Source: Trichosphaerium sp. ATCC 40318 (taxonomy: Eukaryota; Protista; Tubulinea). Taken from it: a stretch of DNA of 64,000 bases. The notes below the pieces were generated by a model. It was not told the origin of the DNA and searched no databases. It saw only the letters and a program-made list of their open reading frames with translations. The position numbers were made by a program, and so were the translations under genes. This document shows positions 1-64,000 of this stretch, piece after piece (within the stretch, counting starts at the first letter, position 1; each line of letters starts with the position of its first letter). The DNA lies in contig JALMLS010000504.1 in NCBI GenBank assembly GCA_038496445.1, forward strand, positions 62,001 through 126,000. Reading direction: 5' to 3'.

Positions 1-671
1 TTGAACATTGGTTAGAAAATTCGCATGAAAAGAAAAAAAAAAAAGACGTCAAGTAGTTTTACATCAAGGTGGCTGTAAACCTTTCTGAAAATAACTTCTT
101 TTAGTTTAATTAATCTCTATGAATATATTACGAGCAATTTTGAGCAAAACCACGTGTCCAAAAATCGATAGTGTTTCAACAAAACAATAACGAACTTTTT
201 GTAAGCAAAAAAGAAATTTCATCAAACCCGAAATTTAAATCTACTAACCTGCTAAAGCTGTAACTTGCTCGATATCATGCTTCTTAGCAAATTTCATTAC
301 TTCGCTAACGTCTTGTGAAGATACTGCTTGTATTATTGCACGTGGTTGACCATCTGGTACGTCATTTGGTAAAATAAGAACTTGGTTCCTATAGAACGAT
401 TAAAAAACCCAAAAAAGACTCAAACTTCCAAAAAGCCTGACTCTTGGCGTGTTTACAACAGAAAAAAGTAAGTTGAACGTACTTTATGTTATCATAGCGG
501 ATATCTCCAGGAAGAAGTACATTCCCTCCAATAACATCTCGTAGGTCTTGCCATGGTTGCGTTGATGCCAAGAACACGAGTGATAAAAGAAGTAGGGTAA
601 CCTAAAGACATGGTAACATTAGTTTATTATTTAACTCATAAAAGGTCACGTGCTTGAAGAGGTGTTGCCAT
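1..671 (-). CDS. Secreted FAD-binding (PCMH/berberine-bridge-like) oxidoreductase, 5' part, multi-exon, runs off the window
   Basis: Spliced reading: MATPLQ|VTLLLLSLVFLASTQ (signal peptide), LRDVIGGNVLLPGDIRY, then PDGQPRAIIQAVSSQDVSEVMKFAKKH. This matches the FAD_binding_4 N-terminal pattern P-x-A-I-x5-DV-x3-KFA. Confidence 0.65.
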
Positions 672-1700
672 CAAGTTTGAAAAGCTTTTCAAAATAACAG
701 GAACAGAATTACACTATTTTTAGAAGCGCACACGCTAGAAGATTCACACAGTTTTCAATAAATATCAGCGAGCGTCTAGAGGTTTAGTTAAAATCTATTA
801 CAGTCAAAATCATCCATATAAAATTGAGTTCACCTTTAATTTTCCCGTTGCTCCGCTTGAAAACTCTTGCAGTCACGTGACGTGGCTACAGCGCCGTGAA
901 TGTCTTATATATTGACGTATACGCCACAACGGCGCAAGATTATGGGCACCACGTAAGAAAGAAATCCCGTTTCAGTGCGCAGTTAATCGCTTGTGCTGTG
1001 TCAACGTACGTCACGGATTACAGTGACAAAAAAAAAAAATGAGTATTTGTAAAGTACGCAAACTCTCGCTGATGCTCGCACAACTATTGACATAGGCTTC
1101 CTTTCACGCTGAACCGGAGTTAAAACAGTACACTGTAAAGTTTAGAGATGTACCAAAACAAACCTTCAAGTTGTCCCGACACGACCAAACTCATAGCTCT
1201 TGTTTTTTGGGATACTTTTGGAGCAGCAAAATGGGAGCAGAAAGAATGGAAAGTTTTTTTGTATTTCAAGATTTTTTTTTTATTTTACGTAGCTCGACTC
1301 TCCTCTATCTTGTTGAACCTAAGATGACAATTATAAGCTTGATCACCTCTTCAGCAGTCATTTGGTATCCTTTGTATACTGCCAGTACATTTCAAAAAGA
1401 GGTCAATTAGAACCTTCCATTGAGCTTCAACAGAAGATATAGAGCGTCTTGTAAGGTTTTCATTGAAGTTTATCTTCTTTGTTTTTATGTTTATATATTT
1501 TCCACCCAAGTAGTAATACAAATGCAGAAGCGCTAACTTCAGATACACTAACAAAAAAAAATCAGCATCCAAGAGAGAAAGTGAAGAAGAGCTTTCACTG
1601 AGTCGTTCTTTTTCAACCGAAAAAAAAATGCAAAAAAAAAAAATGTCATTTTTAGCGCTGAGAGGCTGTATCACGGGTTCACGATGACCCATGATGTAGT

Positions 1701-2267
1701 TTAAATTAAAGCGTACCGCCATAGCCACCATGACACGATGGCAAAGTCCTCAGAAGGCAAAAACTGCCAAGCACCGTAAACTCCTAATCCAGCTGCAACG
1801 CCAAAGAAAGCAGCGTAGAATGAAGCAATCACTGCTGCAGTGCCGGCATACACAACACAAAAAAAAGGCATAAAAGCAAGTGAAAGCATCACTTTAGGTA
1901 CAATATCGGCTACAGTGTCTACAAAAAAAGAGCGTGAGGGTTGTTTTAACGCAAAATAAAGTTATTCGTTAAATAAACAATAAACGCAATTCCCACGTAC
2001 TTGTTTTTGCGCGTTGAACGGGACTTTCAACTCTCTTCTCTAATTCAGCCTTCTTCCAGATGTTGTCCATTACTTTATTCCAGAACTTTGTCATATACTT
2101 GTTCGTACGCTCTAGTATTGCCTCTCGCTCTTATTTTGAGTAAGAGACAATAAAAAACGGTATTTGTTTTACGTACTCGCCAAAGCACCGAAATACATGA
2201 GGGATAGAACCCCTACGCCATCCCAGGCGCACCACAATGGGTAGGCTATACTGCCGAACCAATCCAT
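1701..2267 (-). CDS. Small membrane protein of unknown function (3 exons)
   Basis: MDWFGSIAYPLWCAW... splices in frame through two GTACGT..AG introns to a hydrophobic exon (ORF 1701..1892). The 3' end is uncertain. Confidence 0.5.
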
Positions 2268-2324
2268 GGCTGTTTGAATGAACTGTAACGACTTTTTGTG
2301 ATTTCTATTTTATTCGGACTGAGA

Positions 2325-19850: not shown

Positions 19851-21539
19851 TTATTCAATTAATACATCTTCAGACTCGACTTCTTTTTCCTCTTCTTCAA
19901 CAGTAGGTTCTTCGCCATCTCCATTTTCTTCTGGTTCAATCGTAGGTATCCCATCAGTTTCATCATTGTTCTTGTTTTCTTCAGTTTTGATAGTTTGTCC
20001 TTTCTTCAGTCTCTTTGTCATTTTGGTTTTTATTATGTTTGTTCTGGCACAGCTTCAGGCTTTTTGATTTCTTCTGTTACGATGGTGGGTAAATCCTCGG
20101 TAGTTCTTGGTGCACGTTTTCTACGATATCTAGTAGGTAGTTTCCTTCCTTTAGGCCCCTTAGGTCGTGCTCTCTGTACAACATCAAGGCGAGCTTTTAT
20201 TGAAACTTTTCCAAATTGAGGATCTTCGTAATAAGCTTGAGTAACTGCAGAGTCTTCCAAAGTATTGCTATCACTCTCACCATCTTCTTTATTACTTAAA
20301 GATACCCCAGAAGATCTTGGAGGCGGTGGACCACCAAACATACCCTTTGAAAGGAAGTATAAGCGCACAAGCACAAAACCACAACCTTTGAAGAAAAAAA
20401 GAAAAAGATTTTTTCCACTTACACTCTCATAAGCATAAGTTTTGCGACACTTCGGATTTTTTTTTCGAATCGCGACGTACTCCTTTTTCGTTAATGGTAG
20501 CTGTTAAAAATTTTGTTATGTACATTGAATCTCTTAACTTAGCTTCTTGTCTTCTTGTTTTACGCTTCTCTTCTTCTTCAGCTTTAACTTGCCTTTAAAA
20601 AAAAATGAAACAGTTAGAAACGCTACAATACCTCAAATGTATTACTTTTCTAAAGATTCTAAGTCGACTTCTTTGCCACATACTGAAGTTGACAATTCTA
20701 CTCTCCGCGTTGTTTCTTTCTCTTGTTCAACCTTAGATAGTACCTAACATCATTTAAATAAAAACCAAACAAGTGGGGCGCGTATGAAACGGTTTTTTTT
20801 TCAAACAGCTGCTTACTTTTTCAGGCTTTTCAAGACGCAAGCCGCTTGGTTTTGGAGCTTCCGACGCTCTCCTGAAGTGAACCCATGACCAGGAACTAGA
20901 TCTTCCAACTCCTTGCGCTTTACCTGTAAAATGTCTTAGCCAATAAAAACAACCGCTTGTCACGTGATAATTAAACGTCACGTGATAGTTAAACGTCACA
21001 ACTTCTTTTTTTTTCAAAAAAAGTTTTGTGCACCTTTAGGAAGCATGTTAGGTCCAGAATTTGATAAACGAAATGCTCTACGTATAGAACTCATAATGGT
21101 AGTTCTAACAGACTCATTTGGCCTAAGTTTGAGGGTAAACTTACAAAGTTTTGCACCTCAAATGTCAAAGCGTACGTCGGATCAGAAGGCTCTGTACAAC
21201 ATCTACAACATACCCTTACTTTCTTTTTACCGAATGTTTGTGGTAAAGAAATAAAAAAACAAGCGCAATCACCACAAAAAATACCACCACACTTACGACA
21301 GTGATGCTATAATATAATTTTTAGTAAGGTTTAAAGATAAGAATTTGATGATTTCTTTAAAGAGTGGAATTCTCTTCCAAATACGCACGCGTCTAATGAC
21401 TACATGAAAGGAAGAGCCACAGAACATACACTTATTAAAGTCCTTATTATCAAGCCATTCTGGCTTTACCTTCAAGCATAAATGTTAATTATTGCACGTG
21501 GAGATCCTAACACGTGGTACTTACCTGCTTGGTGGCCAT
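19851..21539 (-). CDS. FYVE zinc-finger protein with Pro-rich and acidic C-terminus
   Basis: Spliced MATKQVKPEWLDNKDFNKCMFCGSSFHVVIRRHHCR contains the FYVE WxxD and RRHHCR motifs. The tail has GGPPPPR and RARPKGPKGRKLPT. Confidence 0.85.
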
Positions 21540-25326: not shown

Positions 25327-25470
25327 TGTAAGAGGGTAAGGTACTCGTGAGTAGTTGTACTAAGCTTGGGTCTGGTTTATTGTTGTCCTTTAAGGACTTA
25401 TTACATTAAGTAGGTGCTCCGGCACCTTCCGGGTTAATCAATGTGATTCATGTCGACTTTCCGCCTTACA
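25327..25470 (-). repeat. 3' LTR (144 bp)
   Basis: TGTAAGAGGG...CGCCTTACA with TGTAAG/CTTACA terminal inverted repeat. No difference from 34002-34145 seen by eye. Confidence 0.97.
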
Positions 25471-25490
25471 AGAACTCCCCTTTCCTTTAG
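25471..25490 (-). other. Polypurine tract
   Basis: Minus strand CTAAAGGAAAGGGGAGTTCT directly abuts the 3' LTR. Confidence 0.8.
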
Positions 25491-25633
25491 CTATGACTTC
25501 CACGTCATAGCCTCTTGTTCAATAAATCTTTCTTCTACTCCTTCTCTGTTCGTTTTCTTCGTGGATCTACTTAGGCAGCATGGAAACCTTCATAACCAAA
25601 TTTACCAAGTTGTCTTGGAGGTCGATTCTGCTC

Positions 25634-28600
25634 CTAAGTGTGATCTCCACTCAATGATAATGCTATGTCCAATGCAAATATATTATCAAAGTTCTCTATT
25701 ACGTAATCTAACCAATCTCGTAGATCGCCCTTCATGCTGCAATTCTTCATTTGCACCATTAATTTATCTTGTGTTGTTCCGTCTCTAACATATGGTGATC
25801 CTGCTCCCATTATATCCTTTATACTTTTCTTTATCTCTTTCATCTCTAATCTCGGTGCCGCTACCACTATGTCTTTTAATATTCTTCTTAGCATTTCCAT
25901 TCTGTGTGCTGTTCTTGATCTTGTTATTCTTCTTCTAGTCGGTGTTACTCCCTCTGTTTTCTTTATTTCATTCGTCAAACTTTCAACTCCTCCGATATCT
26001 TTCTTCATCATTCTTTCTACATCTTTCTTCGTCATCTCTGCTTTCTCTACGTAATCTTCATCTCCTACTAATCTAATGTTTCCATCTTCATCTTCGAATT
26101 TCTCATACTTTTCTTCTATATATTCTTCTGGTCTTAAGAATGAATCAATAAATGGTTTAATTCTTTCTACGTTTATCACTCTACTCATTTGACTGTCTTC
26201 TGGTAGCTTTAACATTACTGTGTTCCGTCCCATCACTCTTAATATCTCATATGGTCCTCTCCATTTGCATGTAAATTTCCCATGTTTTTCCTTCTTGTAT
26301 GGTACGCTTAGCCATACTAGTTGATCTTCTCTGAAGTCTACCCATCTCCTTCTTTTGTTGTAGTATCTCGCTTGGTCCTTCTTAGCCTTTAATATTGCCT
26401 TCTTCGTGATTTGATATGCATGTCTTAGTCTATGTGCTAATACTTCCGCCCAATGTGCCATATTATATTTATCTGGTATCTGTACTTTCTCTTCTGTCGC
26501 CATATCTAATGGTAATCTCGGTTCCCTTCCAAACATTAGCGCGAATGGTGAGTATTTCGTTGCGTGATGTATCGCCGTCCGGTATGCGTAGAGTGCGTAT
26601 GGTATCCAATAGTCCCAGTCATTTTGACTTTCGTTCACAAATGACTTTAATATTTCTACGATTGTGTGGTTGAATCTCTCCATCTGTCCATCTGTTTGCG
26701 GGTGAAATGCTGTCGTCCTTGCTGGTTTGATGTATAACGCTTCGTATACTCTGTTCATGAATTTTCCTGTGAAATCTCTTCCCTGATCCATCAATACCTG
26801 TTTTGGCATTCCATATCTAAAACAGAATTCTTTTATGAATACTAGTGCTACGTCCGTAGCGTGATGACTCACTAACGGATACGCATCAGTCCACTTTGTA
26901 AAGTGATCTGTTATCACTAATAAATATTTATGTCCTCTCACTGTTGTAGGTAACGGCCCTACTATATCCATTGCTATTAACTCCATTGGTTCTAGAATCG
27001 GAAACGAAACTGCAAATCCTCCTTTTGGTTGACGAGGAGTCTTGGCCTTCTGACATTTTCTACAGGAATCGCACCATTCCTTAACATCAGAGTACATTTG
27101 AGGCCAGTAGAATCTCCTTGAAGCACGATCATAAGTTTTGATGAATCCGAAATGGCCTGCGAAAGGCATATCATGACAAGTTCTCATCACTAAGTTCTGC
27201 AATGACGCTGGTACATAGATTTGAAATTGTTTATCTTTTAGGTTAATCCGTGCCATACTATTCTTCACATGGTACAGTATATTTGTATTTTCATCATATC
27301 TTAGTACCCTCGCCTTTGTAATAAATATCAACTTCTTAAATCCGTATTGTTTTTGAACCCATTGTGGAATTCTTCCCTTGGTGAGGAACTCAATGTATGC
27401 CAACGCTTCTCCATCTTCCCTTTGAGCAGCGCTCCAGTTGATAGGTGCTAGCTTCTCTAATATGTTTACTATGTACGGTTGCCATTCCGTGAATTCATTC
27501 TTCTTTGTGACCGCTTCTTCATTTTCTATCATCCCATCATATAATCCTCTTGTTATTAATAATAATTGTTCTCCTTTGTTTGTTTGCATTATTTCCTTAT
27601 TATCTAAGGTATTTACTCTGGCCAGAGGTGGACGCGTGAGTGCGTCCGCGTCCAAATGCTTTTTCCCGGGTTTATATATTAATTTAAAGTCATAATTTTG
27701 CAATTCTAATAACCAATACGCTACCAGCGCTCTTGGGTTTTGCAAATTCTGGATGTACTCCAGTGGTTTATGATCTGTATAAACTATTAGTTTAAATTGT
27801 GAAAATGATATGTATCCAGCGAACTCCTTAATCGCTAATATTATTCCCAATGTTTCCCTTTCAATTGTTGAGTAATTCTGTTGAGCAGCGTTGAATGTTT
27901 TACTGTAGTATGCTACTACATGTTCTCTCCCATTCACCTTTTGTACTAGCGTCGCTCCTGCTGCTACCTTTGATGCATCTACGTGTATTTCAAACGGTAG
28001 TGTGAAGTCTGGATGCCGTAATATTGGTGGTGTTGTCAACAACTGCTTCAACTTCTCATATGCTTTTTGTTCTGTTGTCGTCCAATTCCATATTGTACCC
28101 TTGTGTTTCAATTGATTAAGCGGGTGTGCCCACTGTGCGTAGTTAGGTACGAATCTTCTGTAATATCCCGTGATCCCAAGGAAACGTTCCAATTCGGCGA
28201 TGCAGGTAGGTGGTGGTGCCTCGTCTATCAACTTGATAATTCTAGGATTTGTTGCAATACCATTCGCCGACACGACGTGTCCCAAGAACTCTACCTCATC
28301 TTTAAAAAGCACAGTCTTCGAAGCTTTAAGCATTACATTGTGCTCTTCCAGGCGGTCAAACATGAGTTTAAGATGCACTAGGTGCTCTTCAAAACTCTGA
28401 CTGAATACTATGATATCATCAACATAACAAAGGCACGTCTGCCAGAGAAGTCCGGATAACATCAAATTCATTTGCCTTTGGAACGTAGCCTGTGCATTTT
28501 TCAAACCGAAAGGCATTCCTAACCATTCGTACAAACCCCAGGGTGTCGCAAACGCTGTCTTAGGTCTGCTTTCTTCTGACATCATGATTTGCCAGTACCC

Positions 28601-29107
28601 TGAAATTGCATCAAACAAGCTGAAGTATTTCGCTCTAGCCAGCACCTCCAGTAGTTCTGTTACCCTTGGTAATGGATGCACATCTTTCTTTGTAATCTTA
28701 TTTAGCGCTCTATAATCTATACAGAAGCGCCATGATCCATCCTTTTTCTTAACCAAAACTACTGGCACTGACCATTGTGACTTTGACGGTTGTATCACTC
28801 CTTGCTCTAACATTTTCTCCATTTCTTCTCTTACTATAGCTCTCTTATGTGAGTTAAGTGGTCTATATGGTATGTGTACTGGCTTCTTTCCTTCTTCCGT
28901 TTCAATATGGTGTTCCATTCCTTTCGCGTTCGCTGGCTTCTTCAACTTGGATGTGAATCTATCCAGATGTCCTGCCATGAACCTGTATGCTCTTTCTCTC
29001 TGCTCCTCCGTTAGCTTAGATCCTTCCATTTTAAATAAATCTTTCGCTTTCTTAATATCTTCTTCCTGTACTTGTTTCTCTTCCTCTTTCATCTTCTTTA
29101 TCTCATT
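25634..29107 (-). CDS. pol: pol, C-terminal part: reverse transcriptase, RNase H, integrase
   Basis: RT motifs RFCIDYRALN, MPFGLKNA, YVDD. RNase H motifs DAS, ERE, TDH, DALTR. Integrase HHCC (HDMPFAGH..CDSCRKC), DDE core (MDIVGP, DQG, GQMERFN) and GPY motif (WRGPY). Confidence 0.97.
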   Translation of the reverse strand, partial: NEIKKMKEEEKQVQEEDIKKAKDLFKMEGSKLTEEQRERAYRFMAGHLDRFTSKLKKPANAKGMEHHIETEEGKKPVHIPYRPLNSHKRAIVREEMEKMLEQGVIQPSKSQWSVPVVLVKKKDGSWRFCIDYRALNKITKKDVHPLPRVTELLEVLARAKYFSLFDAISGYWQIMMSEESRPKTAFATPWGLYEWLGMPFGLKNAQATFQRQMNLMLSGLLWQTCLCYVDDIIVFSQSFEEHLVHLKLMFDRLEEHNVMLKASKTVLFKDEVEFLGHVVSANGIATNPRIIKLIDEAPPPTCIAELERFLGITGYYRRFVPNYAQWAHPLNQLKHKGTIWNWTTTEQKAYEKLKQLLTTPPILRHPDFTLPFEIHVDASKVAAGATLVQKVNGREHVVAYYSKTFNAAQQNYSTIERETLGIILAIKEFAGYISFSQFKLIVYTDHKPLEYIQNLQNPRALVAYWLLELQNYDFKLIYKPGKKHLDADALTRPPLARVNTLDNKEIMQTNKGEQLLLITRGLYDGMIENEEAVTKKNEFTEWQPYIVNILEKLAPINWSAAQREDGEALAYIEFLTKGRIPQWVQKQYGFKKLIFITKARVLRYDENTNILYHVKNSMARINLKDKQFQIYVPASLQNLVMRTCHDMPFAGHFGFIKTYDRASRRFYWPQMYSDVKEWCDSCRKCQKAKTPRQPKGGFAVSFPILEPMELIAMDIVGPLPTTVRGHKYLLVITDHFTKWTDAYPLVSHHATDVALVFIKEFCFRYGMPKQVLMDQGRDFTGKFMNRVYEALYIKPARTTAFHPQTDGQMERFNHTIVEILKSFVNESQNDWDYWIPYALYAYRTAIHHATKYSPFALMFGREPRLPLDMATEEKVQIPDKYNMAHWAEVLAHRLRHAYQITKKAILKAKKDQARYYNKRRRWVDFREDQLVWLSVPYKKEKHGKFTCKWRGPYEILRVMGRNTVMLKLPEDSQMSRVINVERIKPFIDSFLRPEEYIEEKYEKFEDEDGNIRLVGDEDYVEKAEMTKKDVERMMKKDIGGVESLTNEIKKTEGVTPTRRRITRSRTAHRMEMLRRILKDIVVAAPRLEMKEIKKSIKDIMGAGSPYVRDGTTQDKLMVQMKNCSMKGDLRDWLDYVIENFDNIFALDIALSLSGDHT

Positions 29108-31079
29108 CAGGTCTGAAAATTATCATGGTATTATACCATATTTTATGGTATAATCACCTTTTATGGTACAAGCTCAGTATAATCCATAATTATACCATAT
29201 AATTATACCATAAAATATGGTATAATACCATGTTTTTTGGACAAATGGTATAACAGCCATTATACCATGTTTATACCATATTTCAATTTATAGAATATAA
29301 TTATACCATAAAACATGGTACTATACCATGGTATTATACCACATTTTACAGTACATTATACCATGCATTATACCATATAATTATACCATAAAACATGGTA
29401 CTATACCATGGTATTATACTGCATTTTAAAGTATATTATACCATGCATTATACCATATAATTATACCATAAAATACGGTATAATACCATGGTATTATACC
29501 ATATTTTACAGTATTGTATACCGTGCATTATACCATATAATTATACCATAAAATGTGGTATTATACCGTGGTATTATACCATATAAGTATAAGTTAGTCA
29601 AAGCTCACTTGGTCTATACTTGATTTAATAGCCTTTGGCCCTACACAAACGCCATACCACACAATGCTTTGACAGTAGCCGTTATTGAACATAATTGGCA
29701 TATAAATGTGTGAAAAACAGTTTTAAGAGAGAAATCTGGTAATGCGCCCCAATTGTGGGCGTTTTAGGGATAAATTGGCCAATTTTCTCCAATTGACAGT
29801 ATTTGAGGAAGAAACCACTCCACATACCCCATGTTAGAACACTACAGTGGTAGACACACCAAAAACGCGTTTAGCGCTTGAAAAATGCCCATTCGCAAAA
29901 AACCTCCAGTTGGAGGTTTTTTTCCCCAGCTTTCATTTTTTTCTCCCCTCCATAGGCATTTTTACACTCAATCAACGCCATACAGCCTCATTTACCAAAT
30001 CAGGAGCAAAATTATTTATTTTTTTTTGACATTTTTGATATACGCTCCAATGCATGTTAAAACGCGTGAATAGTGCTATAAGGCCAAGTTGTTTCAGAGC
30101 CTACCCATTTTTTGAGTTTTTTGGTTTTTTTTGGATTTTTTTGGATTTTTTTGAATTTTTCCCTACTAAATGCCCGCATTTGCCAGAACAGATAGCATTT
30201 AGGCTTCACACCCATGTGTTGACCTTACGAGTGATATTGTAAACCAATTGGCTAAGTCAGAGCACAAAACTAAGTCTTGTCCAGTTTATCGCCCGCACAA
30301 CACAAGGTACGCTAAAAGTAGTTGTTTTGAAGCCGCTTGCCATAGGTTTTAACCAAGCTAAATAGATGATAAAAAAAAAACCAAGATGTGTTAGCTAACA
30401 GGTACGATTCCGCTAGAACTTGTTTCCGATGAAGTTGGCAGTTATTTTCATTTCTTTGTTTTAGTCTTGGTTTGGCTCCACCACACAGGTCATTTGTTAC
30501 TCCCAGTGCTGCCACCACAACAAAACAGCAATTTTTGTACGACTATTTATTTTGTGCATCAAGCCTTCACTAATTCTTCTTCTAGTTTTCATGCTATGTC
30601 CATTCGATGCACTTACAGCAAGTACAATATTTTTTTTGAAGGTTATTTGATGTGTCAACTACCACAAAAGAGGATATGGACAAAACCAAAGGTCACGGAT
30701 GTAAACAAAAAAATGTATTAATAAATGTGGTTTTATTATTAGAACAGTTTTTACACAGTATAATACACTTGGTTTTGTGGTATAATCTACCAAGTTTTAA
30801 GGTATAATATACCAGACTTTGTGGTATTATACTGTGTTTTATACCATGTTTTATGGTAGAATTATACCATATATTGCATTTTTTCAGGTGAAAAAATATG
30901 GTATAAATTCGCACTTTCTACTGCATATTTATGGTATAATTTGGCTGTTTTATGGTATAAATCCTTTGATTTATGGTATATTATACTGGAATTTGTGGTA
31001 TAAAATTGTAATCAATGGTATAATTATACCACAAATTCATGGTATCTACCATAAAAACAGCTCGAGAATTTTAGACCTG
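29108..31079. mobile_element. Non-autonomous DNA transposon (1972 bp) inserted in pol; TIRs CAGGTCT(G)AAAATT, 2-bp TT TSD, subterminal repeat arrays
   Basis: Left end CAGGTCTGAAAATT at 29108; right end AATTTTAGACCTG at 31079. TT flanks both ends. Removing the element plus one TT restores ...DYT-NEIKKM... in frame. Confidence 0.88.
29120..29585. repeat. Subterminal array of TATACCAT/ATGGTATA motifs, including an 80-bp higher-order tandem (about 3.5 copies)
   Basis: ttataccataaaa recurs at 29301, 29381, 29461 and 29541. The same motif clusters again at ~30775-31052. Confidence 0.9.
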
Positions 31080-33950: not shown

Positions 33951-33982
33951 CTTATGATCTCCGTGACTTATGTAGATCAAAG

Positions 33983-33999: not shown

Positions 34000-34001
34000 A
34001 A

Positions 34002-34145: not shown

Positions 34146-34618
34146 ACTGTTGTAACTTTTTTTATCCTTGTACATCTAATTGTATCAACTTTTTGAGATG
34201 TATGAGCAAGAAGCTTCCCTAAAGTATCACGTGATAAATAAAAGAGTTAAATTCATGCATTGTAAGAGCCTTTTGTTTATTAATCGTCTTTACATTCCTT
34301 GAAGCCATCCCAGTGAGTGCAATGTCTACGCCAAAAAGAAGAGAGAATGTGCTTGAGAAACGTTAACGGCATTCTTAGATCAGCTACAAAGAATCTTCAA
34401 CTGGGTTCTAAAGTACACCTGATAAATTTCCAACAGATCCTTTCTTTCAAAGTTTGTGGTAATAGTGAACACTGCCAAGGCGAACGAAACATGGCGGCCA
34501 GAACAAACTCGGAGTATCATGATACCAGACATCGATATCCAGTACAATTGTCAAAAATGACAACGTTCAAAGCAACACAGTATTTGAAATACTTTTTTTA
34601 TTTTGTATTTGTTTACAT

Positions 34619-44946: not shown

Positions 44947-47900
44947 ATGCAGAGCATCTCCACGCTTATAGCTCTTTGTTTTCTTATATTAGCGCTTACT
45001 GGTACGAAATACACTTAAACACATCCACACGCAAGAGACTACTGCTGATGGCCATTTATAACAAAAATCTATTTGAAGTGTTTTGTGCCTCTTATCTCAC
45101 AAAGTCATAACCACCACCACTATGTAGGTGCTACGACGACCAAGCGCCAAATGACTGTCACTTGGGCGGAGTTTCTTAGCGATATTTCTTCATCGTGTCA
45201 GGACACTGTTAACAGTGCTAATACAGTCACGTGGATCATAAATGATCCTTCCCGAAACCTACAGCTTGAAATGTTTAGAATCGATACACCTTTTCTATCA
45301 ACAACGACCATAACAAAAAATGATAATCAAGTCCAGCCCATCCCAAGTACGTACCAGTCTTCGTAAAAGGAAAAAATCTAAACTTGTGTCGCTACTACGG
45401 CAGCAATTTATCAAAAAATCACGTGGAATTGAAAAGTTTCTATTTTTAGTCAAAAACACAATTATACTAACCCCTTATACTATCCAGATAAATGGTATTT
45501 TTACGGTGATGTCGTAACTTCCACTGATCGAGATAACTCTGCTGCTTTCATAATGGTAGATAAAGGCACTTTACAAGTTTTTGGAGGCTACCACGACGGC
45601 GTACAAACTTGTTTATCTTGTTTTTCTGTTTGACAGCCTTTTCCCATAATGCGTATTTACCTTTTGTTTAGGGTAGCTTTTCAATAATAATACAGGGTAC
45701 AGCCAATGCTCAAGGAAGTACTATAGCATACGAGAACGAGTTCTTCTTCTTTCCTGACCTTAGTAAAAAGAAAAGTACTTCAGAAGAGCCAAGTACGCCA
45801 ACAAACTAACTAAAACATCTTAAACAACTTAATGATTTTTGAATAGCAACATCTTGTGGTTTCGATCATGTTGACCATGATCATGATGGAGTGCCAGAAG
45901 ACGCTAAACGCCAAGGTGGAGGATCTCCTTTTTTTAAGTATACATACAATGCAGGTCTAGATTTAAACACGCCATACTATACAGCAAGGGTATCGCTTTG
46001 TTTTTTTTCCAAATTAGACCTAATTTTAATCCACTAGTATGCTGTCGATGTTACATCTGATGTATTCAGCACCTCTGGTCAGTCTGAACAGTTTGTCATA
46101 GACTGGATAACTGCTACTTTCGCTTGGGGAAGTTGGGTATACGAAAGAGAATATGCACTTAAACTCAAATTAGCTGCAGTTTTCTATTACACAGACCCGA
46201 GTAAACTACATAAAAAAAACCCATAAATGACATCTTCTCACTTTTATATAGGCACTGATCCATATGATGGCTTGACAACTAACAGTACTATAGCATTGAA
46301 CACCTTAGAAAGGCTATATCCAGAAACACCGTATGCCAAGTTTGTAACTTTCTTCATACTAACGAAAATTTCAAGCGCGAAGAATGCAATTCAAAGAGAG
46401 TCAACATTAATTCTTTTCGGAAGTAGTAGTAGTAATAGCGCTTCAGGATTGGCTGGTTTGAATGTTTTCTGTGCTCCTGGATTCGCTTCAGCTTCAATTG
46501 GATGGAGGCTTGCTTCTGGATCAATGGTACCTTAAGAAGTTTTATAAAACTTTATTTTACTATGGTAGCTAACCACTGATCTAGAGACTAATGTTTCATG
46601 AGATTGGTCATAACGCTGGCAGTGAGCATACGCATTGTTATGGGGACTTGAGAATGAATATACCCGGCTTTGAGATGACAGAGGGCATAGATGGATGTGG
46701 CTTTGGTGGAGATGGATGTACTCCAGGAAGTATTGTACCAGATGAATGTAAGTTATTTGAAACAACATTGCTGTATTGACTTGGGTATTGTAGCATCGAT
46801 TATGTCTACTGGATGTCCTCAGGCTACAACTAGAGTGGCTTATCTTGGTAGAGCTGGTTTCTATGGTACAAACAGCGAACGTGTTCCTATTCTTCTGAGA
46901 GCTGCAATTGCATGGAGAAGAGGTACAACCATTCATAAAACAAAACACTGTTTTGTTAACATTTATGTAGTTTCTCCAAATAACTTTGCAAACTGCCTCC
47001 CTGATTGGGTTCACGGTTCAACAACAGTAGAATGTGATGACATTTTCCCAACAACAATGACAGATCCCCCAACAACTCTACCTCCAATGACAACTGATCC
47101 TCCAACAAGTCTACCGCCAACAACTCTACCACCAATGACAACAGACCCTCCAACAAGTCTACCTCCAACAACACTACCACCAATGACAACTGACCCTCCA
47201 ACAAGTCTACCACCAACTACACTACCTCCAATGACAACTGATCCTCCAACAAGTTTACCACCAACAACTCTACCACCAATGACAACTGATCCTCCAACAA
47301 GTCTGCCACCAACAACTCTACCTCCAACTATGACAGACCCTCCTACAACGCTACCTCCAACGACACTACCACCAATGACGACAGACCCTCCAACAAGTCT
47401 ACCACCAACAACATTACCGCCAATAACAACAGATCCTCCAACAACAGAACCACCTAATGCGCCACCAACTACAATAGCACCAAACACACCTCCAACAACT
47501 GTACCACCTACAACACCTCCAATAACAACAGATCCTCCAACGAGTCTACCACCAACAACATTACCGCCAATAACAACAGATCCTCCAACAACAGAACCAC
47601 CTAATGCGCCACCAACTACAATAGCACCAAACACACCTCCAACAAGTCTACCACCAACAACAATACCTCCAATAACAACAGATCCTCCAACAACAGAACC
47701 ACCTAATGCGCCACCAACTACAATAGCACCAAACACACCTCCAACAACTGTACCACCTACAACAACTCCAACAACATCAGCGCCAACTGAATCACCCACA
47801 AGTCAACCAACAACCATCACTCCAACTACAACTGCACCTGTGGGTCCTCCAACAAGGGCTCCTGTGCGATTCATACCACCACCAACAACTTCACCTGTGG

Positions 47901-49338
47901 GACCTCCAACAAGGGCTCCTGTGCAATTCACACAACCCCCTCCGACAAGGGCTCCTGCGCAATTCACACAACCTCCTACAAGGGCTCCTGCACAATTCAC
48001 ACAACCTCCAACAAGCGCCCCTGCGCAATTCACGCAACCTCCAACAAGGGCTCCTTTCCAATTCACGCAACCTCCAACAAATGCTCCTGTGCAATTCACG
48101 CAACCGCCAACAAGCGCTCCTGGTACTATATCTCCCACCAACGCCCCATTTGCTCCTCCAACACAACCTCCTACAAATGCACCATTTGGTACAGAAGAAC
48201 CAACCAACGCCCCATTCCCTCCTCCAACACAACCTCCTACAAATGCACCATTTGGTACAGAAGCACCAACAAATGCGCCATTCCCTCCTCCAACCACCCC
48301 TCCTACAAACGCACCGTTTGGTACAGAAGCACCAACCAATGCCCCATTCCCTCCTCCAACCAGCCCTCCTACAAACGCACCATTTGGTACAGAAGCACCA
48401 ACCAATGCGCCATTCCCTCCTCCAACCAGCCCTCCTACAAACGCACCGTTTGGTACAAAAGCACCAACCAATGCCCCATTCCCTCCTCCAACCAGCCCTC
48501 CTACAAACGCACCAGTTCAAACAAGTTCTCCAACCAGTTTACCAACAAGCGCACCAGTTTCAACATGTTCTCCATTCACTCTTGATGGTGGCGTGTTTCC
48601 AAATGGTGTATTCTCTATGGCAGATACTCAAGGATCTGAAGCACCACCACCCTATTGTCTACGATTAGATCGTGGTACCAATATGGTACAAATATTATTA
48701 TGTTTACTCTGCATTATGTTTAACTTCTATTTTTAGAATCCAGTGACTTTGTCGTGTATCAGCAATAATGTCAGAATTACGTTTGATCCTGTTTCTCGAA
48801 GTTTACAAATGTCTGGTGTAACTAGTGGAGGTGTTGATACTGGAAATGTCAGACCAAGCAATTCTTTAGCTCCATTTGTGACAGTATTTAGGTATGTTTA
48901 AGCAACTATTCAAGACTTAACTTATTCTCTCCTCACTCACTCTGTTATAGTAATGTCGAAATTATTGCAACAGGAGAAAGGTTTAGAATGATCTCATCAA
49001 ATTTAAGCCAAGGCTTACTCATTTTCAATGTACACCTTTTCAATCAACTTTTTACTGATTCTTAATTTTTTCTCTTTATTTATGTTGCCGCTTACATTGT
49101 AATTATAGAATGTCTTTTACCTGGCATCACCAGTTCCAGGTGTTAATAGCGTTATAATATCAGGAAATAGCAATGGATACACAATTGAGTATGTCACTAA
49201 TGAAACACTAATCTAACATAACAAAACTTTATTGACTTTTTTTTTTTGTTTAGTGCAAGCTTCAATTTTCTTCAATTGCAAAATCAACAAGTACACACCA
49301 TCAACATTAATGCATCAATTGGAAATTGTATAGCTTGA
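44947..49338 (+). CDS. Secreted reprolysin-like (M12B/M84-type) zinc metalloprotease with long Pro/Thr mucin stalk and C-terminal domain
   Basis: Signal MQSISTLIALCFLILALT, cysteine switch CGFDH, SGLAGLNVFC, HEIGHNAGSEH zincin motif, SIMS Met-turn. Confidence 0.88.
47050..48560 (+). repeat. Coding tandem repeats of the mucin stalk (TTDPPTSLPPTTLPPM, FTQPPT and NAPFGTEAPTNAPFPPPT units)
   Basis: Successive blocks of different repeat units within ORF 46691..48736. Confidence 0.9.
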
Positions 49339-49561
49339 GTTTGATCCTTCTGAGTTAAAGGCTCTTAAACTTATGTAATTAAATGTAATAGAATATAATC
49401 AAAAAAGGGGTTTCAAACCAAATAAAGAAACAACCTCGCTTTAGCAGTAACATGCTCAAAAAAGTACAAAGAAGCACCCTTATTTACATAGGCACAATTG
49501 AATCTATTAAAGACATGTAGCATTTGCTCTGATCGCTACCAACCGATCCAGCCTAGAAAAA

Positions 49562-49603
49562 TGGCTAAGATCAAATGTAGTATCTGTTTTATTAAGTTTG
49601 ATA
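49562..49603 (+). repeat. Solo end of the TGGCTAAGATC TIR family
   Basis: tggctaagatcaaatgtagtatctgttttattaagttt matches the reverse complement of 50905-50944 with a few mismatches. Confidence 0.7.
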
Positions 49604-50624
49604 AGTATCATAGAAGATCAACTAAGAGAAAAACTGTTACAACGTGCTTCCTTAGGATCAGTTTCTATTTCACCGATCTTACAGTACAACCAACCACCAA
49701 TTTTGAAGTATTCATAAAGCACCACATTTTAGCGAAGACATGCAAGGTACATCCCTTGATTGCAATTACAGCATTGCTTGCAACAATACCTGGTTTTGGG
49801 TAGATTGATAATGGTACACTCTAACTTGTGATTTTTGTTTAGACTAGAGCGCCGTTTATCTAAACAACGTATTTATTGCATACGGCGCAAGATTTCTGTT
49901 TTGTGACTTGGAGAATTGCAATACTAACGCAGTTTTGTACAATATTCAAAGTTGAACATAGAATCTTTCTTTCGTAGCAAAGGGGTAGTACTATTTGTTT
50001 CCACACTGGTAACAAACCATGTAAAATACACCACATCCTTATGGCCAAGTATTTAATATCCCTCCTTAATATCCCAGAGCGCCCTACACCATTGAGAATT
50101 GTGTACGCTAGAACACCGGCCAGGACACTCGAGACTAGTACATAAGGGTCGCTTAATATAACTCAGAGCACATTCACATTAACAGTGTACAATTGACTTG
50201 TTTAGTAGTAAACGTACTATAAAACGCATAGGCGTTAGTCTAACAAAAGATATTGACACGCTTAGCCAACCCGTTTCCTATGAAACGGCGAACGGAGTTT
50301 ACCATTTGTGAACTTATACTTGAATCAATGAGCTTTTGCTAAAGCTCTTACAACTTGTACAACTCTTTTTTAGCGCTTTTTAATACTTATCCAAACAACG
50401 GTTTAGTGAGTTTGAGGTAATTGTGAAAGCTGAGTGTACTGTAAGCGAGTGACGTGTAATATTCCGAGTCCAATCACATGTTGAAAACAGGGAAAAAAAA
50501 AGTACAATGAGCTTGTTAATAACTTTGGACATACCTTTTGGACGTAGAACGTACGGTAAGCAATTAGATTCTGTGTTCTTCCCACAGGTTTTGGAAAACA
50601 AAACGAAAAGTGTGATTTGTTTTG

Positions 50625-50944
50625 TGGCTAAGATCAGGTGTAGTATCTCCGAAATTTAGCAAAATTTTTCGACTTATGAAATTTTTTTGGTAAATTTAGA
50701 CCCTAAGATAGAGATTGTCGTCCCAGCCCGAAGGTGGTTATTAATTTTCTTTGTTGTTTAGAGAAGGGGTTGACCTCATCTGGCGGGTAGTGTAAGGCCT
50801 GACAGATCATTGCTGGGGTGGAAAGGCAAGCCAGTCCGACAATCCCCTGCCCCCGGAAAAAATTCGCTTAATCTTGTGGGGGACATTCGTCCCCCATTCA
50901 GAGATTAAACTGAATAGAACAGATACTACACTTGATCTTAGCCA
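50625..50944. mobile_element. 320-bp MITE-like element with 24-bp TIRs and a GC-rich structured core
   Basis: TGGCTAAGATCAGGTGTAGTATCT vs AGATACTACACTTGATCTTAGCCA (1 mismatch). No clear TSD. Confidence 0.75.
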
Positions 50945-52163
50945 AAAGGCCGAGAAGGTTACTTACTGGATGCACTTGAACATGATTTATCATGCAATAC
51001 ATATTTTTAATTGTGGTATTATCAAAAAAATAAGAAATTGCAAAATAAAATGTACACACCAACGCATACCACAATATCATTGATCGGTATAAGGTTTTTA
51101 AATTATTAGAATATATGATAACAACCTGGAAAAATAACTCAAGCTCATCTTTGATTATTTTCATTGAGCGTTATTGAACGTTTAAAGTCAATTGCACGAA
51201 AATGTGGAGAAAAACTTTTGTGCATCCGTATTTTCCTTTTGTTCAGAAAAAAAGCCTTAAAAAAGCAGCTTGTCAGTATTTGATATTCTACTAGTAAGGA
51301 GCTATACAGAGTTGTAACATCAGTTCGTCCTTAATCACATTTAAAGACACGCGTATGAATAGTGACAAGCACAATGTTATTTTATTTGCGTTCATTTTCT
51401 TACACATCAGCGTGGTCCATTGGCGCAAATACGCTGTTCCAAGTATTACAATAGTAAGTTAAGCTTGCAAAATACTAATCCAGTCAACAGACGCTCCGAC
51501 TACAAGACTCCAACAACTCCACATCATGCAACAACTCATACCTTTTGGTCACCAACACAATCTACAACGCCCTTCACTACTCATTCACCACCCACATCAC
51601 CACCAACAGGCGTTGCTTCATCATGACTCAAGAATCTACCAACCAGGTTTTTTGAAGTTGATGACACTATTAATTTTTGTTTTTGAGCACCTTTAGAATT
51701 AGTCGTTATAATCCGCGCTAGCACAAGGCGTGTACTACTGCGGTTTAGTTGTGCATCAGCGCTAGTACTATTTGTAGCATCGTTTGCTTACTGCTGGAGC
51801 ACGGCGAGTTTGGAAAGTGGAACCTCTTAAAACGTATTTCATCTTGGATGTGACGGTTAGAAGTAACACACAGTATCAGTTTCAACAGATGATTCGATCA
51901 CAAGAAATGTAACGATAGACGAGAAGACTCGAGGATGTGATTCATTGAAATTTTGAGAGTATTCACGTGCTTAGAGAGAGACTCCGTGTAAGTTGTAGTT
52001 GTTGTTTAATTGTTAATGTAACAAACCACTTTCTACCTCAGTCACAAGTTCTGTTACAATAAATCTCGTGTTCTAACTTCCTGAAGTAATTCATGGAAAA
52101 AACAAAATCGTATGTTTGACTTAACTGTTGATTGTCGTACTTTAATTTTGCTGTTTAAACCTC

Positions 52164-53057
52164 ATGCACAGCTTAATAATTGCTTTATCCTTATTTATGT
52201 GCTTAGTACAATGCCAGGTAATGAAACACAACTGACTATAATAACTGTAGCTATAATCTAATTTGTTATAGATCACGCTTGTCGAATATACAATGGCGGA
52301 TATGGCACTCGCTATTCCAGCCAACACTCCATCAGCACCAGGAGTTACAGGTGTTGATTTAACAAGAGGAATGGGTATTAATCAGGACAACAGGATGAAC
52401 TCTTTTAGTTCAAGAGGCATGTGATTAACCGAAAAAAAACTGTAGTGGTTTTTTTGCTTTTCCCCGAAATACCAATTGGTTAAAGGTTCTTTATTGATTG
52501 TATTTATAGACTTCACAAGCTTTAACACGAACCTCGATGTTGCTGTAACCAATGAAGACTTTTTAGAATTTGGGTTTACTACCACAACACCATACGAGCT
52601 TGTTAGTATGGAGTACGTGAACGTAAAACAAGTTGATCAACTTCTTGTAAATTCTGTAATATTAATGCATTGTAGTTTCACTCATGACAAGAGTAGTACA
52701 GGACCTAATGAGCTAGCTTTCTTTCTTGATATCGACGGAGTTGTAGCAACAATGCCCTTTGATTCATTCACTCCTGTAATCGATACTTTTGATGATATTG
52801 GTACTGACATCTCCATAAATTTTCCTCCAGGAACAATGATCCAAAGTTCTGCAACAATCAAGATTGTTGGATTTAGAGCAAGTTCTGCATTGGGAACATA
52901 CTCACTCTTTGGTACCTTGTCAGTGTTTGGAGTACCTGGTATGATACCTTGTGTGAGTAAGAAGCGAAGCATTCATGAGGAAGGGGTTGCTTATAATCAA
53001 CGCATTGCTTTGCTTAAGGGTCTATCACGTGATAGAAAAATGCCATCAAAACAGTGA
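52164..53057 (+). CDS. Small secreted protein of unknown function, paralogue A (4 exons)
   Basis: Signal MHSLIIALSLFMCLVQC. The exons join in frame, one through a GC-AG intron (52417). Confidence 0.75.
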
Positions 53058-62632: not shown

Positions 62633-63311
62633 TACATCCATAATGGCGTATAAACCCCATAGCCTGGAACTATTGTATATTAAAGAAAAAACCCAAAAAA
62701 TTTAATCGTCCAATGTAAAAAAGGTTTCCTGTTACTTTATGCTACCACATACAGCTTAAAACGTTAAGCCATGTTGTCATGGGTGTGATAAATATAATTT
62801 TCTTCGTCAAAGTGAAAAAAAACACATGAGTAATTTCTCCAAAAATGGCGTCCACGTGATTTTATTATTTTCTATTAGGTTGTCAACTTTTTCTCATAAG
62901 TGACCTTGGTGATGTTTCAGAAGTTACTATTGCATGTGACACTCGCTACTCAGGTAAAGCTTTGGTTATTTTAACTGAACAAAATAATTAATTGAATGAT
63001 GCTGTGTAGGTTTGGAAAAAGCAACACTCACTTGCTGTTGACAATTTGGATATTGAGAAACCAAGTGTATGTGTTTTTTCTCTTGATAACAACCTTAATA
63101 TTGAGTTATTTAGGGTTTTTGTTTGTACAAGAGATGCATGTCGCACAAACCTTAGAATACAACAAACTTCACAAAGTCATTGTCTCAATAATAAAACTAA
63201 TTTCACAAATTTGTTTGAAAAATGTTACTAAAAAAAAAAAGAGCAAAAACTGTTCGCTTGCATGATAAAAAAAAGTTTGTTTATTCTTCTATTCTTTTAT
63301 AATTCTTTAAT

Positions 63312-64000
63312 CTAAATTAATCTTCTACTAATCCAGGGACCTTGATGGTTTTCACGTGATATAGAAAACGTGCCAGCCAGCCGAAGTGTTTCTATACCTT
63401 TGTCACTCACTTTTGTTCCTCCCAGTCTAATAGTGTGAACACCTGCTAGGGCATTAACACATTCATCTGTAACACTTGCAAATCTCAGAGAAATATCGTG
63501 GACACCCGAAAGTGCTTTTACACCTTCATCCGTAACTTTAGTGCTCTCTAGAGATATAGTGTGTACACCTGAAAGTGCTTCAACACCTTCATCCGTAACC
63601 TTAGTGCTCTCTAGATCTATAGTGTGTACACCTGAAAGTGCTTTGACTCCTTCATCTGTAACTTTAGTGTCCTTAAGGTCAATAGCATGAACACCTGCTA
63701 ACGCTTTGATCCCTTCATCTGTTATCAGGGAAGAATGGGCAAGTTTAATGGTATGAACACCCGCAAGTGCTTTTACACCATCATCTGTAACTTTAGTGTA
63801 CTCCAGATCAATAAAATGGACTCCTGCAAGTGGTTTTACACCTTCATCAGTCACTCTTGTAGAACGAAGGTATATTGTGTGAACACCCGCAAGTGCTTTC
63901 AAACCTTCATCTTTTACTCGGATTCCTACTAAAGTAATTGTATGAACCCCTTGCAAGTGCTTTGACACCTCTGTATGTAACCTTGGTTTCATTGAGGATG
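63312..64000 (-). CDS. Intronless 22-aa leucine-rich-repeat protein (GVHTIxLxxTxVTDEGVKAL), 3' part, with an apparent frameshift near 63950
   Basis: About 9 regular 66-bp repeats in ORF 63312..63992. The repeat register continues in another frame upstream of 63950. Confidence 0.85.
   Translation of the reverse strand, partial: SSMKPRLHTEVSKHLQGVHTITLVGIRVKDEGLKALAGVHTIYLRSTRVTDEGVKPLAGVHFIDLEYTKVTDDGVKALAGVHTIKLAHSSLITDEGIKALAGVHAIDLKDTKVTDEGVKALSGVHTIDLESTKVTDEGVEALSGVHTISLESTKVTDEGVKALSGVHDISLRFASVTDECVNALAGVHTIRLGGTKVSDKGIETLRLAGTFSISRENHQGPWISRRLI

Follow-up and report, generated by a model that had tools for sequence, protein, structure and literature searches.

The window analysed here is a 64,000-nucleotide stretch of the genome of the marine amoeba Trichosphaerium sp. 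ATCC 40318 (assembly GCA_038496445.1, contig JALMLS010000504.1, positions 62,001 to 126,000 of the forward strand). It contains predicted multi-exon genes, a young Gypsy retrotransposon, a repetitive open reading frame and a pair of paralogous genes (A and B), and scattered through it are 64 exact copies of the palindrome CACGTG. Table 1 lists the features considered. Each site was assigned to a class using our own unsupervised gene model, and multi-exon genes were searched exon by exon, without the use of joined models.

Table 1. CACGTG sites and associated features of the 64,000-nucleotide window.
Feature	Position	Strand	Observations
All CACGTG sites	151..63358		64 sites. Intron (25): 151, 647, 2938, 7359, 10650, 12952, 13458, 17059, 17213, 20961, 20979, 21495, 21511, 22822, 37161, 38702, 38767, 45420, 53887, 55687, 60233, 60510, 60761, 61649, 62540. 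Coding exon (14): 339, 4204, 4727, 6377, 9085, 9979, 22245, 33641, 39947, 45228, 53026, 54632, 58632, 63353. Spacer/UTR (25): the rest
Close pair	20961..20984		18 bp centre to centre, inside an 18-nt tandem repeat that carries GTCACGTGATA
Close pair	21495..21516		16 bp centre to centre, inside one 55-nt predicted intron on the minus strand
Gypsy retrotransposon	25327..34146	-	Young element of 8.8 kb used as the baseline control; LTRs at 25327-25471 and 34002-34146, 100% identical; RT, RNase H and integrase domains present; 1 site (33641), about 1.1 expected from its composition
Stretch without a site	45426..51963		6.5 kb; contains a Pro/Thr-rich repetitive ORF (46691-48736) that is open on both strands; 1.0 site expected, 0 observed
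Upstream site of paralog A	51964..51969		Block AGAGTATTCACGTG shared with paralog B (53441), while the surrounding upstream DNA has diverged
Upstream site of paralog B	53441..53446		Matches the site at 51964
CATGTG in paralog A	52418..52423		Paralog B has CACGTG (53887), within a block that is 94-96% identical; one gain or one loss by a C/T transition
3' site of paralog A	53026..53031		TATCACGTGATAG at the 3' end of the coding region; paralog B keeps it at 54632

Abundance of CACGTG

The first-pass annotation had counted about 63 sites by eye and described the word as strongly over-represented in host DNA, and this observation is confirmed. Dinucleotide-preserving shuffles of the window gave 9.02±3.45 sites with a maximum of 18, and none of 100 shuffles reached 64. 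Nearly all of the coordinates listed in that annotation are right, although the site placed at 51965 starts at 51964 and there is no site at 54572, the nearest being at 54632 and 54757. Its claim that the word is nearly absent from the retrotransposon is weakened, since the single site in the element is simply the chance level, and the element is therefore at baseline and not depleted.

It had been proposed in advance that the excess would be discounted if it disappeared under a higher-order Markov model, being explained by ACGT frequency for example, or if other palindromic hexamers were equally enriched. Markov expectations for the window are 7.8, 9.5, 11.5, 16.8 and 33.1 at orders 0 to 4, respectively, and the excess therefore survives the first of these. 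CACGTG is the top non-homopolymer hexamer in the window, and it is also top in an independent 200 kb of a second contig (C1), with 172 sites observed against 33.0, 46.7 and 89.5 at orders 1, 3 and 4. The second condition did not hold either, as CACGTG is 7.5 times expectation in non-coding DNA whereas the next palindromes (AGCGCT, ACGCGT and GATATC) are only 2.2-2.5 times. Half-site variants such as CACGCG, CATGTG and CACGTT are near expectation, as are most one-off neighbours (range 0.4-1.7), so that the exact palindrome stands alone.

Genome-wide there are 53,777 sites, against 10,418 for the reversed word, and the extended form ATCACGTGAT occurs 3,194 times, against 72. The 10-mer is thus 44 times its control, compared with 5 times for the core. 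The paper describing this genome does not mention the motif. As a loose control, we made the same word count in 26 actin-bearing metagenome contigs totalling about 215 kb, none of them taken to be human, and found 61 sites against 55 expected. Searches for close relatives gave none: an M20 exon matched only marine bacteria, and an actin exon matched mostly animals, including primate entries, none of which was used. A search for contigs encoding one ORF of the window, from which records of this genome were left out, returned nothing.

Distribution of the sites

We next addressed where the sites lie. In the sampled 264 kb, which is 0.4% of the 70-Mb genome and to which the gene model was applied, the density is 1.44/kb in introns, 1.11/kb in spacers and 0.52/kb in coding DNA. 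The coding figure is nevertheless 3.4 times that of synonymous-codon shuffles (61 sites observed against 17.7±4.2), the excess is present in all three frames, and in exons of at least 360 nt, trimmed at both ends, 17 sites were observed against 4.8±2.0. The profile is flat around predicted start and stop codons, with no enrichment upstream of predicted ATGs, and convergent, divergent and tandem spacers carry 1.12, 1.07 and 1.11 sites/kb, respectively. Within introns there is no fixed position. Only about 11% of predicted introns carry a site, none of the 78 introns shorter than 45 nt does, and distances to both splice sites are broadly spread, apart from a mild, non-significant bump 30-50 nt before the acceptor (2.3-2.5/kb against 1.6-2.0/kb elsewhere in the intron interior).

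The word is not a repeat. Of 236 sampled sites, 228 have unique 80-nt flanks, and the remaining 8 form four pairs that all come from local duplications. Young DNA, namely the Gypsy element with identical LTRs and tandem-repeat genes, sits at the chance level, and DNA with a paralog in the sample has 2-3 times fewer sites; transposon age was not analysed. Comparison of paralogs was under-powered, with 8 sites conserved and 3 not, against 5.3 expected. However, the upstream site shared by paralogs A and B, about 390 nt before their start codons, is a conserved 14-nt island between diverged upstream regions, in agreement with what had been noted for it at first pass.

CpG is not depleted, with an observed/expected ratio of 0.97-1.08 in non-coding DNA and 0.90 in the Gypsy element. 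The one-off neighbours of CACGTG are not consistently depleted, and the deamination products CATGTG/CACATG are not depleted at all, being 0.93-1.0 times expectation at order 1 and above 1 at order 3.

Spacing and flanking sequence

Spacing periodicity had been named beforehand as a point to examine. Counts per 1-4 kb are Poisson, which speaks against a kilobase-scale lattice, and a chromatin-phasing array at nucleosome scale is therefore not seen. Close pairs, however, are helically phased, with centre-to-centre distances of about 11, 21 and 31 bp. The 50 pairs examined have distances of 10-13, 19-24 and 27-32 bp, with none at 7-9, 14-16 or 25-26, and the Rayleigh R is 0.53 at 10-10.5 bp, with a global p below 1/3000. 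Genome-wide, gaps of 13-17 nt hold 506 of 1,898 pairs, against 316 if gaps were uniform (z about 11.7). The evidence for phasing is these 50 pairs plus two genome-wide counts, it is seen only for pairs closer than 36 bp, and the two close pairs in the window itself are off-phase. Whether the sites have a quasi-periodic spacing along the genome, as a HIP-type palindrome would, is left undecided by these observations. The sequences between close pairs are all different.

The extension TCACGTGA(T), which had also been pointed out at first pass, is real. In the window T is at -1 in 34 of 64 sites, A at +1 in 27 and T at +2 in 32. Flank preferences are graded and symmetric: per half-site, T at -1 is 1.40 times background and C 0.47 times, while A at -2 is 1.55 times. 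This is the flank preference typical of USF, TFE, SREBP and Cbf1, as opposed to CCACGTGG for Myc/Max, and the pattern suits a transcription-factor-like binder and not a restriction-type enzyme. Sites sit in slightly more A/T-rich DNA, and A6+/T6+ runs lie within 40 bp of 44% of sites, against 31% of near-cognate controls.

Candidate reader proteins

A search for bHLH factors and bacterial-type DNA methyltransferases had likewise been suggested at the outset. Nine HLH loci were found in the genome, and four of them (numbered L001, L002, L004 and L006) have His-x3-Glu-x3-Arg in the basic region, the residues that read CACGTG and whose roles have been described (PMC6329520). The closest solved structures to L001 are USF, MITF, TFEB, SREBP, Pho4 and Max, all CACGTG binders. 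At least six bZIP loci are also present, and bZIP proteins could also read an ACGT-core palindrome.

No N6/N4 or Dam-type methyltransferase was found in a six-frame scan, although absence in such a scan is not proof. The only C5 enzyme found is of DNMT1 type, at 645.5-646.9 kb of contig C7, and its best match among solved structures is DNMT1 (E = 2e-17). A search for Tet_JBP gave no hit, which does not establish that such a gene is lacking.

Discussion

The first-pass interpretation, that the density is too high and too independent of position for ordinary promoter sites and may represent a genome-wide mark such as a chromatin-phasing site, a methylation or self/non-self tag or a mutation/repair bias, is partly supported. 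Its first half holds, as does its placing of sites in coding exons, where the motif is in excess at the synonymous level. Of the marks suggested, the nucleosome-scale phasing array is not seen, a methylation tag lacks its expected footprints, and a repair bias of the Vsr kind is not supported, since CATGTG/CACATG are not depleted and CpG observed/expected is about 1, although a different conversion drive is not excluded.

Our preferred reading, to which we give a probability of about 0.45, is that CACGTG, with the fuller form A-T-CACGTG-A-T flanked by A/T runs, is a DNA-level word recognised as double-stranded DNA by a dimeric protein, and that the most likely readers are one or more USF/TFE/SREBP-like bHLH-zipper factors encoded by this genome. 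In this view the sites, which do not behave as gene-specific promoter elements, are spread at random, about one per kb, over all long-resident DNA, and are kept there by a weak, uniform pressure, an 8- to 11-fold excess corresponding to a scaled advantage of about 2 per site. Newly arrived or newly amplified DNA would start at the chance level. The preference of neighbouring sites for whole helical turns fits two dimers bound on the same face of the helix, or a fixed rotational setting on nucleosomes. The analysis itself demonstrates the excess, its distribution, the flank preferences, the phasing and the presence of suitable bHLH genes; that these bHLH proteins are the readers, that the pressure is selection for occupancy, and what the bound protein does (open or 'resident' chromatin, or an architectural role) are inferences, made without binding, expression or chromatin data. 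The two SREBP-like factors of this genome are membrane-tethered, which does not suit an abundant constitutive chromatin factor.

The alternative that survives best, though we consider it unlikely, is a neutral sequence-specific drive, in which some repair or gene-conversion bias favours CACGTG over its near relatives everywhere, so that the word piles up with residence time and has no function of its own. The Poisson counts, the equal density in all spacer types and flat profile around genes, the excess in coding DNA in all three frames, and the baseline level of young DNA are what such a drive would also give. Against it, there is no consistent depletion of the one-off neighbours that it should consume, CpG is not depleted, helical phasing between neighbours and graded flank preferences are not expected from a drive acting on single hexamers, and no known eukaryotic mechanism has this specificity.

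Two further readings are less likely. The first is a DNA-modification mark, in which the central CpG is methylated, or kept unmethylated, as a self tag. A DNMT1-type gene exists, bHLH binding to CACGTG is sensitive to CpG methylation, and TET enzymes prefer CpGs in bHLH and bZIP sites (PMC9451156). However, no orphan methyltransferase of bacterial type was found in the scan, the CpG ratios give no sign of mutagenic 5mC, DNMT1 has no hexamer specificity, and graded flank preferences do not fit a strict recognition site. The second is that these are ordinary promoter or enhancer E-boxes that merely look ubiquitous because the genome is compact (about 2.6 kb per gene). There are about 2 sites per predicted gene (53,777 sites and 27,369 transcripts), one conserved upstream site precedes a paralog pair, and suitable bHLH genes are present, but the flat profile at predicted starts, the undiminished density in convergent spacers, which hold no promoter, the highest density being in introns, and the extension into long exons all count against it.

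An RNA-level or splicing signal is very unlikely despite the high intron density and the mild bump before the acceptor, given the low intron occupancy, the broadly spread positions, the nearly equal density of spacers, including convergent ones, and a strict palindrome with symmetric flanks, which points to double-stranded DNA. Fragments of a dispersed repeat, MITE, introner or transposon footprint, for which only the abundance itself speaks, are refuted for the sampled 264 kb by the unique flanks, the differing sequences between close pairs and the lower density in repeated DNA.

A more speculative possibility, which we regard as unlikely, is a eukaryotic counterpart of HIP1, a 'resident DNA' watermark. 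A USF-like bHLH-zipper able to bind two sites at once would read about 54,000 helically phased ATCACGTGAT sites and keep long-resident DNA in an open or protected state, while newly arrived transposons and giant-virus DNA, lacking the word, would be treated differently. The genome paper reports that this amoeba takes up giant-virus DNA in unusual amounts.

If the sites are bound, this is a eukaryote that uses a classic transcription-factor word at about one copy per kilobase, with copies that extend into exons, show no link to promoters and are helically phased, and no case of this kind turned up in the papers searched. It would give a tractable system for asking how DNA sequence itself marks host chromatin against incoming elements. 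If instead it is a neutral drive, it would be the first sequence-specific drive of this kind that we know of in a eukaryote. Long reads (Nanopore and PacBio, PRJNA826761), a published annotation and RNA-seq (PRJNA826761, PRJNA833396) already exist for this strain.

Comparison with known systems

Cyanobacterial HIP1 (GCGATCGC) is a hyperabundant palindrome (PMC5861425; PMC4390886). Both it and CACGTG are short exact palindromes far above expectation in coding and non-coding DNA alike, both remain in excess against codon-shuffled sequence, and both average one or more copies per gene. HIP1, however, is bacterial, 8 bp long, 15- to 300-fold enriched and tied to two orphan methyltransferases, whereas here the host is a eukaryote, the word is 6 bp (10 bp when graded flanks are counted), no bacterial-type methyltransferase was found and a transcription-factor family fits as the reader.

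The periodic An/Tn clusters (PATCs) of C. elegans, which protect germline genes from silencing (PMC4947018), are likewise abundant non-coding DNA features, richest in introns, with 10-bp helical periodicity, that foreign or newly arrived DNA lacks. PATCs are a structural A/T periodicity without a specific word and are concentrated in particular genes and chromosome arms, whereas here an exact palindrome, for which any anti-silencing role is untested, is scattered as a Poisson process. With the sites of architectural or general regulatory factors (yeast Reb1/Abf1/Cbf1 next to poly(dA:dT); animal CTCF) the present case shares tens of thousands of sites for one factor, in intergenic, intronic and exonic DNA, with an association with A/T runs. 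Here binding, a nucleosome effect and looping have not been shown, and there is no preference for gene boundaries.

The class-B E-box read by bHLH-zipper factors (USF, MITF/TFE, SREBP, Max, Pho4, and yeast Cbf1 at RTCACRTG) has the same core and the same flank preference, with T before the core, A after it and a purine at -2, and the genome encodes bHLH domains with the His, Glu and Arg contacts, whose closest solved structures are USF, MITF, TFEB and SREBP. Known E-boxes are local regulatory sites at promoters or enhancers, or at centromeres for Cbf1, whereas here about 54,000 copies show no position preference relative to genes and extend into coding exons, and the word is 5- to 11-fold enriched genome-wide.

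CACGTG is over-represented throughout the genome

We first asked whether the abundance of CACGTG could be accounted for by base composition or by shorter words. The word occurs 64 times in the 64-kb window, whereas dinucleotide-preserving shuffles give 9.02±3.45 with a maximum of 18, and Markov models of order 1, 3 and 4 predict 9.5, 16.8 and 33.1 copies. The first-pass annotation had specified that disappearance of the excess under a higher-order model would count against it; this was not seen, and the excess is therefore not explained by ACGT frequency or by the splice donor. CACGTG is the top non-homopolymer hexamer in the window, and the same holds in an independent 200-kb stretch of contig C1 (1,255,013 bp), where 172 copies were observed against 33.0, 46.7 and 89.5 expected at the same orders. 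Equal enrichment of other palindromic hexamers had also been set in advance as a reason to reject the observation. In non-coding DNA of the 264-kb sample (the window plus the 200-kb stretch) CACGTG is 7.5 times expectation, whereas the next palindromes (AGCGCT, ACGCGT and GATATC) are only mildly over-represented, at 2.2-2.5 times the order-1 expectation, and AAATTT-type words are the most under-represented. Across the genome there are 53,777 sites, against 10,418 for the reversed word, and ATCACGTGAT occurs 3,194 times, against 72. By contrast, 26 actin-bearing eukaryotic contigs from metagenomes show no such excess (61 observed against 55 expected). The excess noted at the outset is thus confirmed.

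The published assembly of Trichosphaerium sp., a marine amoebozoan, has 37.69% GC, 27,369 transcripts and a mean intron of 75 bp (PMC10521059). That paper contains neither 'motif' nor 'methyl', and literature searches for a genome-wide CACGTG excess in a eukaryote found nothing. The word is not a repeat, since of 236 sites in 264 kb, 228 have unique 80-nt flanks and the other 8 lie in four local duplications.

Distribution of sites relative to predicted genes

To assign sites to genomic classes, as had been proposed beforehand, we trained an unsupervised two-strand HMM gene finder on the window plus the 200 kb. The model converged on a GTA[C/A]GT donor and a TAG acceptor and predicts 45-49% coding sequence. 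GTACGT is itself among the most over-represented hexamers in non-coding DNA (100 observed against 32 expected). The median predicted intron is 61 nt (mean 90), with lengths peaking at 40-60 nt, and the mean exon is 182 nt, where the genome paper gives 75 and 154 (PMC10521059). The model misses some exons (an example is given in the table below), and the figures for each class are therefore approximate. On this basis, density is 1.44/kb in introns, 1.11/kb in spacer plus UTR and 0.52/kb in coding DNA. Coding DNA nevertheless holds 3.4 times more sites than synonymous-codon shuffles (61 against 17.7±4.2, with 0 of 300 shuffles reaching 61), and all three frames show the excess. It also holds in exons of at least 360 nt trimmed by 30 nt at each end (17 against 4.8±2.0). 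The pressure therefore acts on DNA and not on protein.

Around 75 predicted genes the profile is flat at both the start and the stop, and convergent, divergent and tandem spacers carry 1.12, 1.07 and 1.11 sites/kb, respectively. Only about 11% of introns contain a site, none of the 78 introns shorter than 45 nt does, and distances to both splice sites are broad. Sites avoid the first 40 nt or so and the last 20 nt or so of introns, with only a mild bump 30-50 nt before the acceptor.

Coordinates of features described in the text (L-numbers are our locus labels)
Sequence	Position	Strand	Feature
Window	2838-2929		Exon near these positions, missed by the gene model
Window	20955-21000		18-nt unit (GTCACGTGATAATTAAAC-like) repeated about 2.5 times in a predicted intron; the only place in the window where the motif is multiplied by tandem duplication
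Window	25327-34146		Gypsy element with 100% identical LTRs
Window	33641		The only CACGTG between the LTRs
Window	51964 and 53441		14-nt island, AGAGTATTCACGTG, shared by two duplicated genes in otherwise diverged upstream DNA
Window	53026 and 54632		Site shared by the two duplicated genes at the 3' end of the coding region
Window	52418		CATGTG in one copy of the duplicated genes
Window	53887		CACGTG at the corresponding point in the other copy
C1	214911 and 214931		Phased pair of CACGTG sites just upstream of the M20 exon
C1	214981-215928 (L011:4981-5928)	+	316-aa exon encoding an M20 amidohydrolase, with one CACGTG inside it
C1	239000-256100 (L013-L015)		17-kb block, 44.6% GC, of Gly/Ser/Lys-rich tandem repeats open on both strands; a giant repetitive gene or array; no CACGTG
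C1 sample	L015:6479-8176, L021:7064-7753, L029:8762-9859, L028:3080-4201		Family of long single-exon genes with an F-box-like N-terminus and MORN_2 repeats
L026	206-1012	+	ORF with a Tc5-transposase HTH domain, next to further long ORFs
C7	644018-647164 (L030)	-	Multi-exon DNMT1-type cytosine methyltransferase gene

Density at the kilobase scale and in young or duplicated DNA

We next addressed the spacing of sites, for which a test of periodicity had been suggested. Raw inter-site distances are over-dispersed, with a coefficient of variation of 1.4-1.5, and this comes from three blocks that lack the word: the Gypsy element, a Pro/Thr-rich repetitive ORF in the window and the 17-kb tandem-repeat gene on C1. 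Each block is at or below its composition-based expectation, with 2 sites observed in the 9.3-kb block scored around the Gypsy against 1.1 expected, 0 against 1.0, and 0 against 1.9, respectively. When these blocks are removed, counts per 1, 2 and 4 kb are Poisson, with variance/mean of 0.95-1.13.

DNA that has a paralog inside the sample has 2-3 times fewer sites. The F-box/MORN_2 family, whose paralogs lie within 100 kb of each other, is likewise poorer in CACGTG than unique DNA; given the giant-virus gene traffic reported for this genome, a viral origin for it is worth considering. Most of at least 150 reverse-transcriptase matches in the genome have open frames of 500 to more than 2,000 aa, and together with the identical LTRs this suggests that the retrotransposon population is very young. 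The Gypsy element and the reverse-transcriptase copies were only counted and described. The Tc5-type ORF may be a pogo/Tc5-like DNA transposon or a domesticated copy. The M20 amidohydrolase exon has its best relatives, at 54-58% identity, in marine gammaproteobacteria (Vibrio, Marinomonas, Oceanospirillum) and is probably a horizontally acquired gene. It now carries the word. For the duplicated genes of the window, one upstream site and one coding site are shared and one point differs. Across all duplicated DNA in the sample, 8 site instances are conserved and 3 are not, against 5.3 expected, numbers too small to decide anything.

Mutational footprints argue against Vsr-like repair and heavy CpG methylation

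CpG observed/expected is 0.97 in spacers, 1.08 in introns, 0.75 in coding DNA and 0.90 in the Gypsy. The deamination products CATGTG/CACATG are at 0.93-1.0 of expectation, and most other one-off neighbours are near expectation as well (range 0.4-1.7), with only GACGTG/CACGTC about 2-fold low. This argues against a Vsr-like repair drive and against heavy CpG methylation.

Neighbouring sites are helically phased

Genome-wide there are 1,898 pairs of sites with a gap of 1-30 nt, whereas a homogeneous Poisson model predicts about 1,234, and our hand estimate allowing for the coding/non-coding difference is about 1,460. The first 50 pairs, taken in genome order, have centre-to-centre distances of 10-13, 19-24 and 27-32 bp, and none falls at 7-9, 14-16 or 25-26 bp. 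The Rayleigh R is 0.53 at 10-10.5 bp, a value that none of 3,000 random sets reached over all periods from 5 to 16 bp. Gaps of 13-17 nt account for 506 of the 1,898 pairs, against 316 if gaps were uniform (z of about 11.7 by our arithmetic). The two close pairs in the window, at 16 and 18 bp, are exceptions, and one of them sits in the 18-nt tandem repeat. The spacers between the pairs all differ, so this is not a repeated element. Neighbouring sites therefore tend to lie on the same face of the helix, which is expected for cooperative protein binding or for rotational positioning on nucleosomes, and is not expected for a drive acting on single hexamers.

Candidate readers of the word

Since bHLH factors and bacterial-type DNA methyltransferases had been named beforehand as the proteins to look for, we searched the genome for both. 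Multi-exon genes were searched exon by exon and not as joined models. Nine HLH loci were found, four of which have His-x3-Glu-x3-Arg in the basic region, the residues that contact the E-box (PMC6329520). At least six bZIP loci also exist. No N6/N4, Dam or Tet_JBP match was found in the genome, although the Tet search has no positive control. The C5 methyltransferase on contig C7 carries the PCQ, ENV and QxRxR motifs and a DNMT1-like target-recognition region, and is present in a genome whose non-coding CpG observed/expected is about 1; a second fragment, on contig C59, contains an in-frame TAG.

In non-coding sites each half-site prefers T at -1 (1.40 times background, with C at 0.47 times) and A at -2 (1.55 times), and positions -3 to -5 are A-rich. 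A6+/T6+ runs lie within 40 bp of 44% of sites, against 31% of near-cognate controls. This graded, symmetric extension explains why the 10-mer is enriched far more than the core.

Interpretation and comparison with known factors

The data fit a double-stranded DNA word read by a dimeric, transcription-factor-like protein. In this view it would be held at about one per kb by a weak and uniform pressure on resident DNA, and would be absent from young DNA only because that DNA starts at the chance level. The excess, its distribution, the flank preferences, the phasing and the presence of suitable bHLH genes were observed here, whereas it is inferred that these bHLH proteins are the readers and that the pressure is selection for occupancy, and what the bound protein would do is not shown. 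We tentatively favour bHLH-zipper binding sites kept by selection for occupancy, at a probability of about 0.45. A neutral conversion or repair drive is unlikely but is the strongest alternative, while a modification mark and ordinary regulatory E-boxes are each less likely still. The first-pass annotation had proposed a genome-wide mark, such as a chromatin-phasing factor site, a methylation or self/non-self tag, or a mutation or repair bias, and this interpretation is partly supported.

Among known systems, the HLH locus L001 is closest to the solved structures of USF, MITF, TFEB, SREBP, Pho4 and Max. The flank preference of the sites is that of USF, TFE, SREBP and Cbf1-type factors, whereas Myc/Max prefers CCACGTGG.
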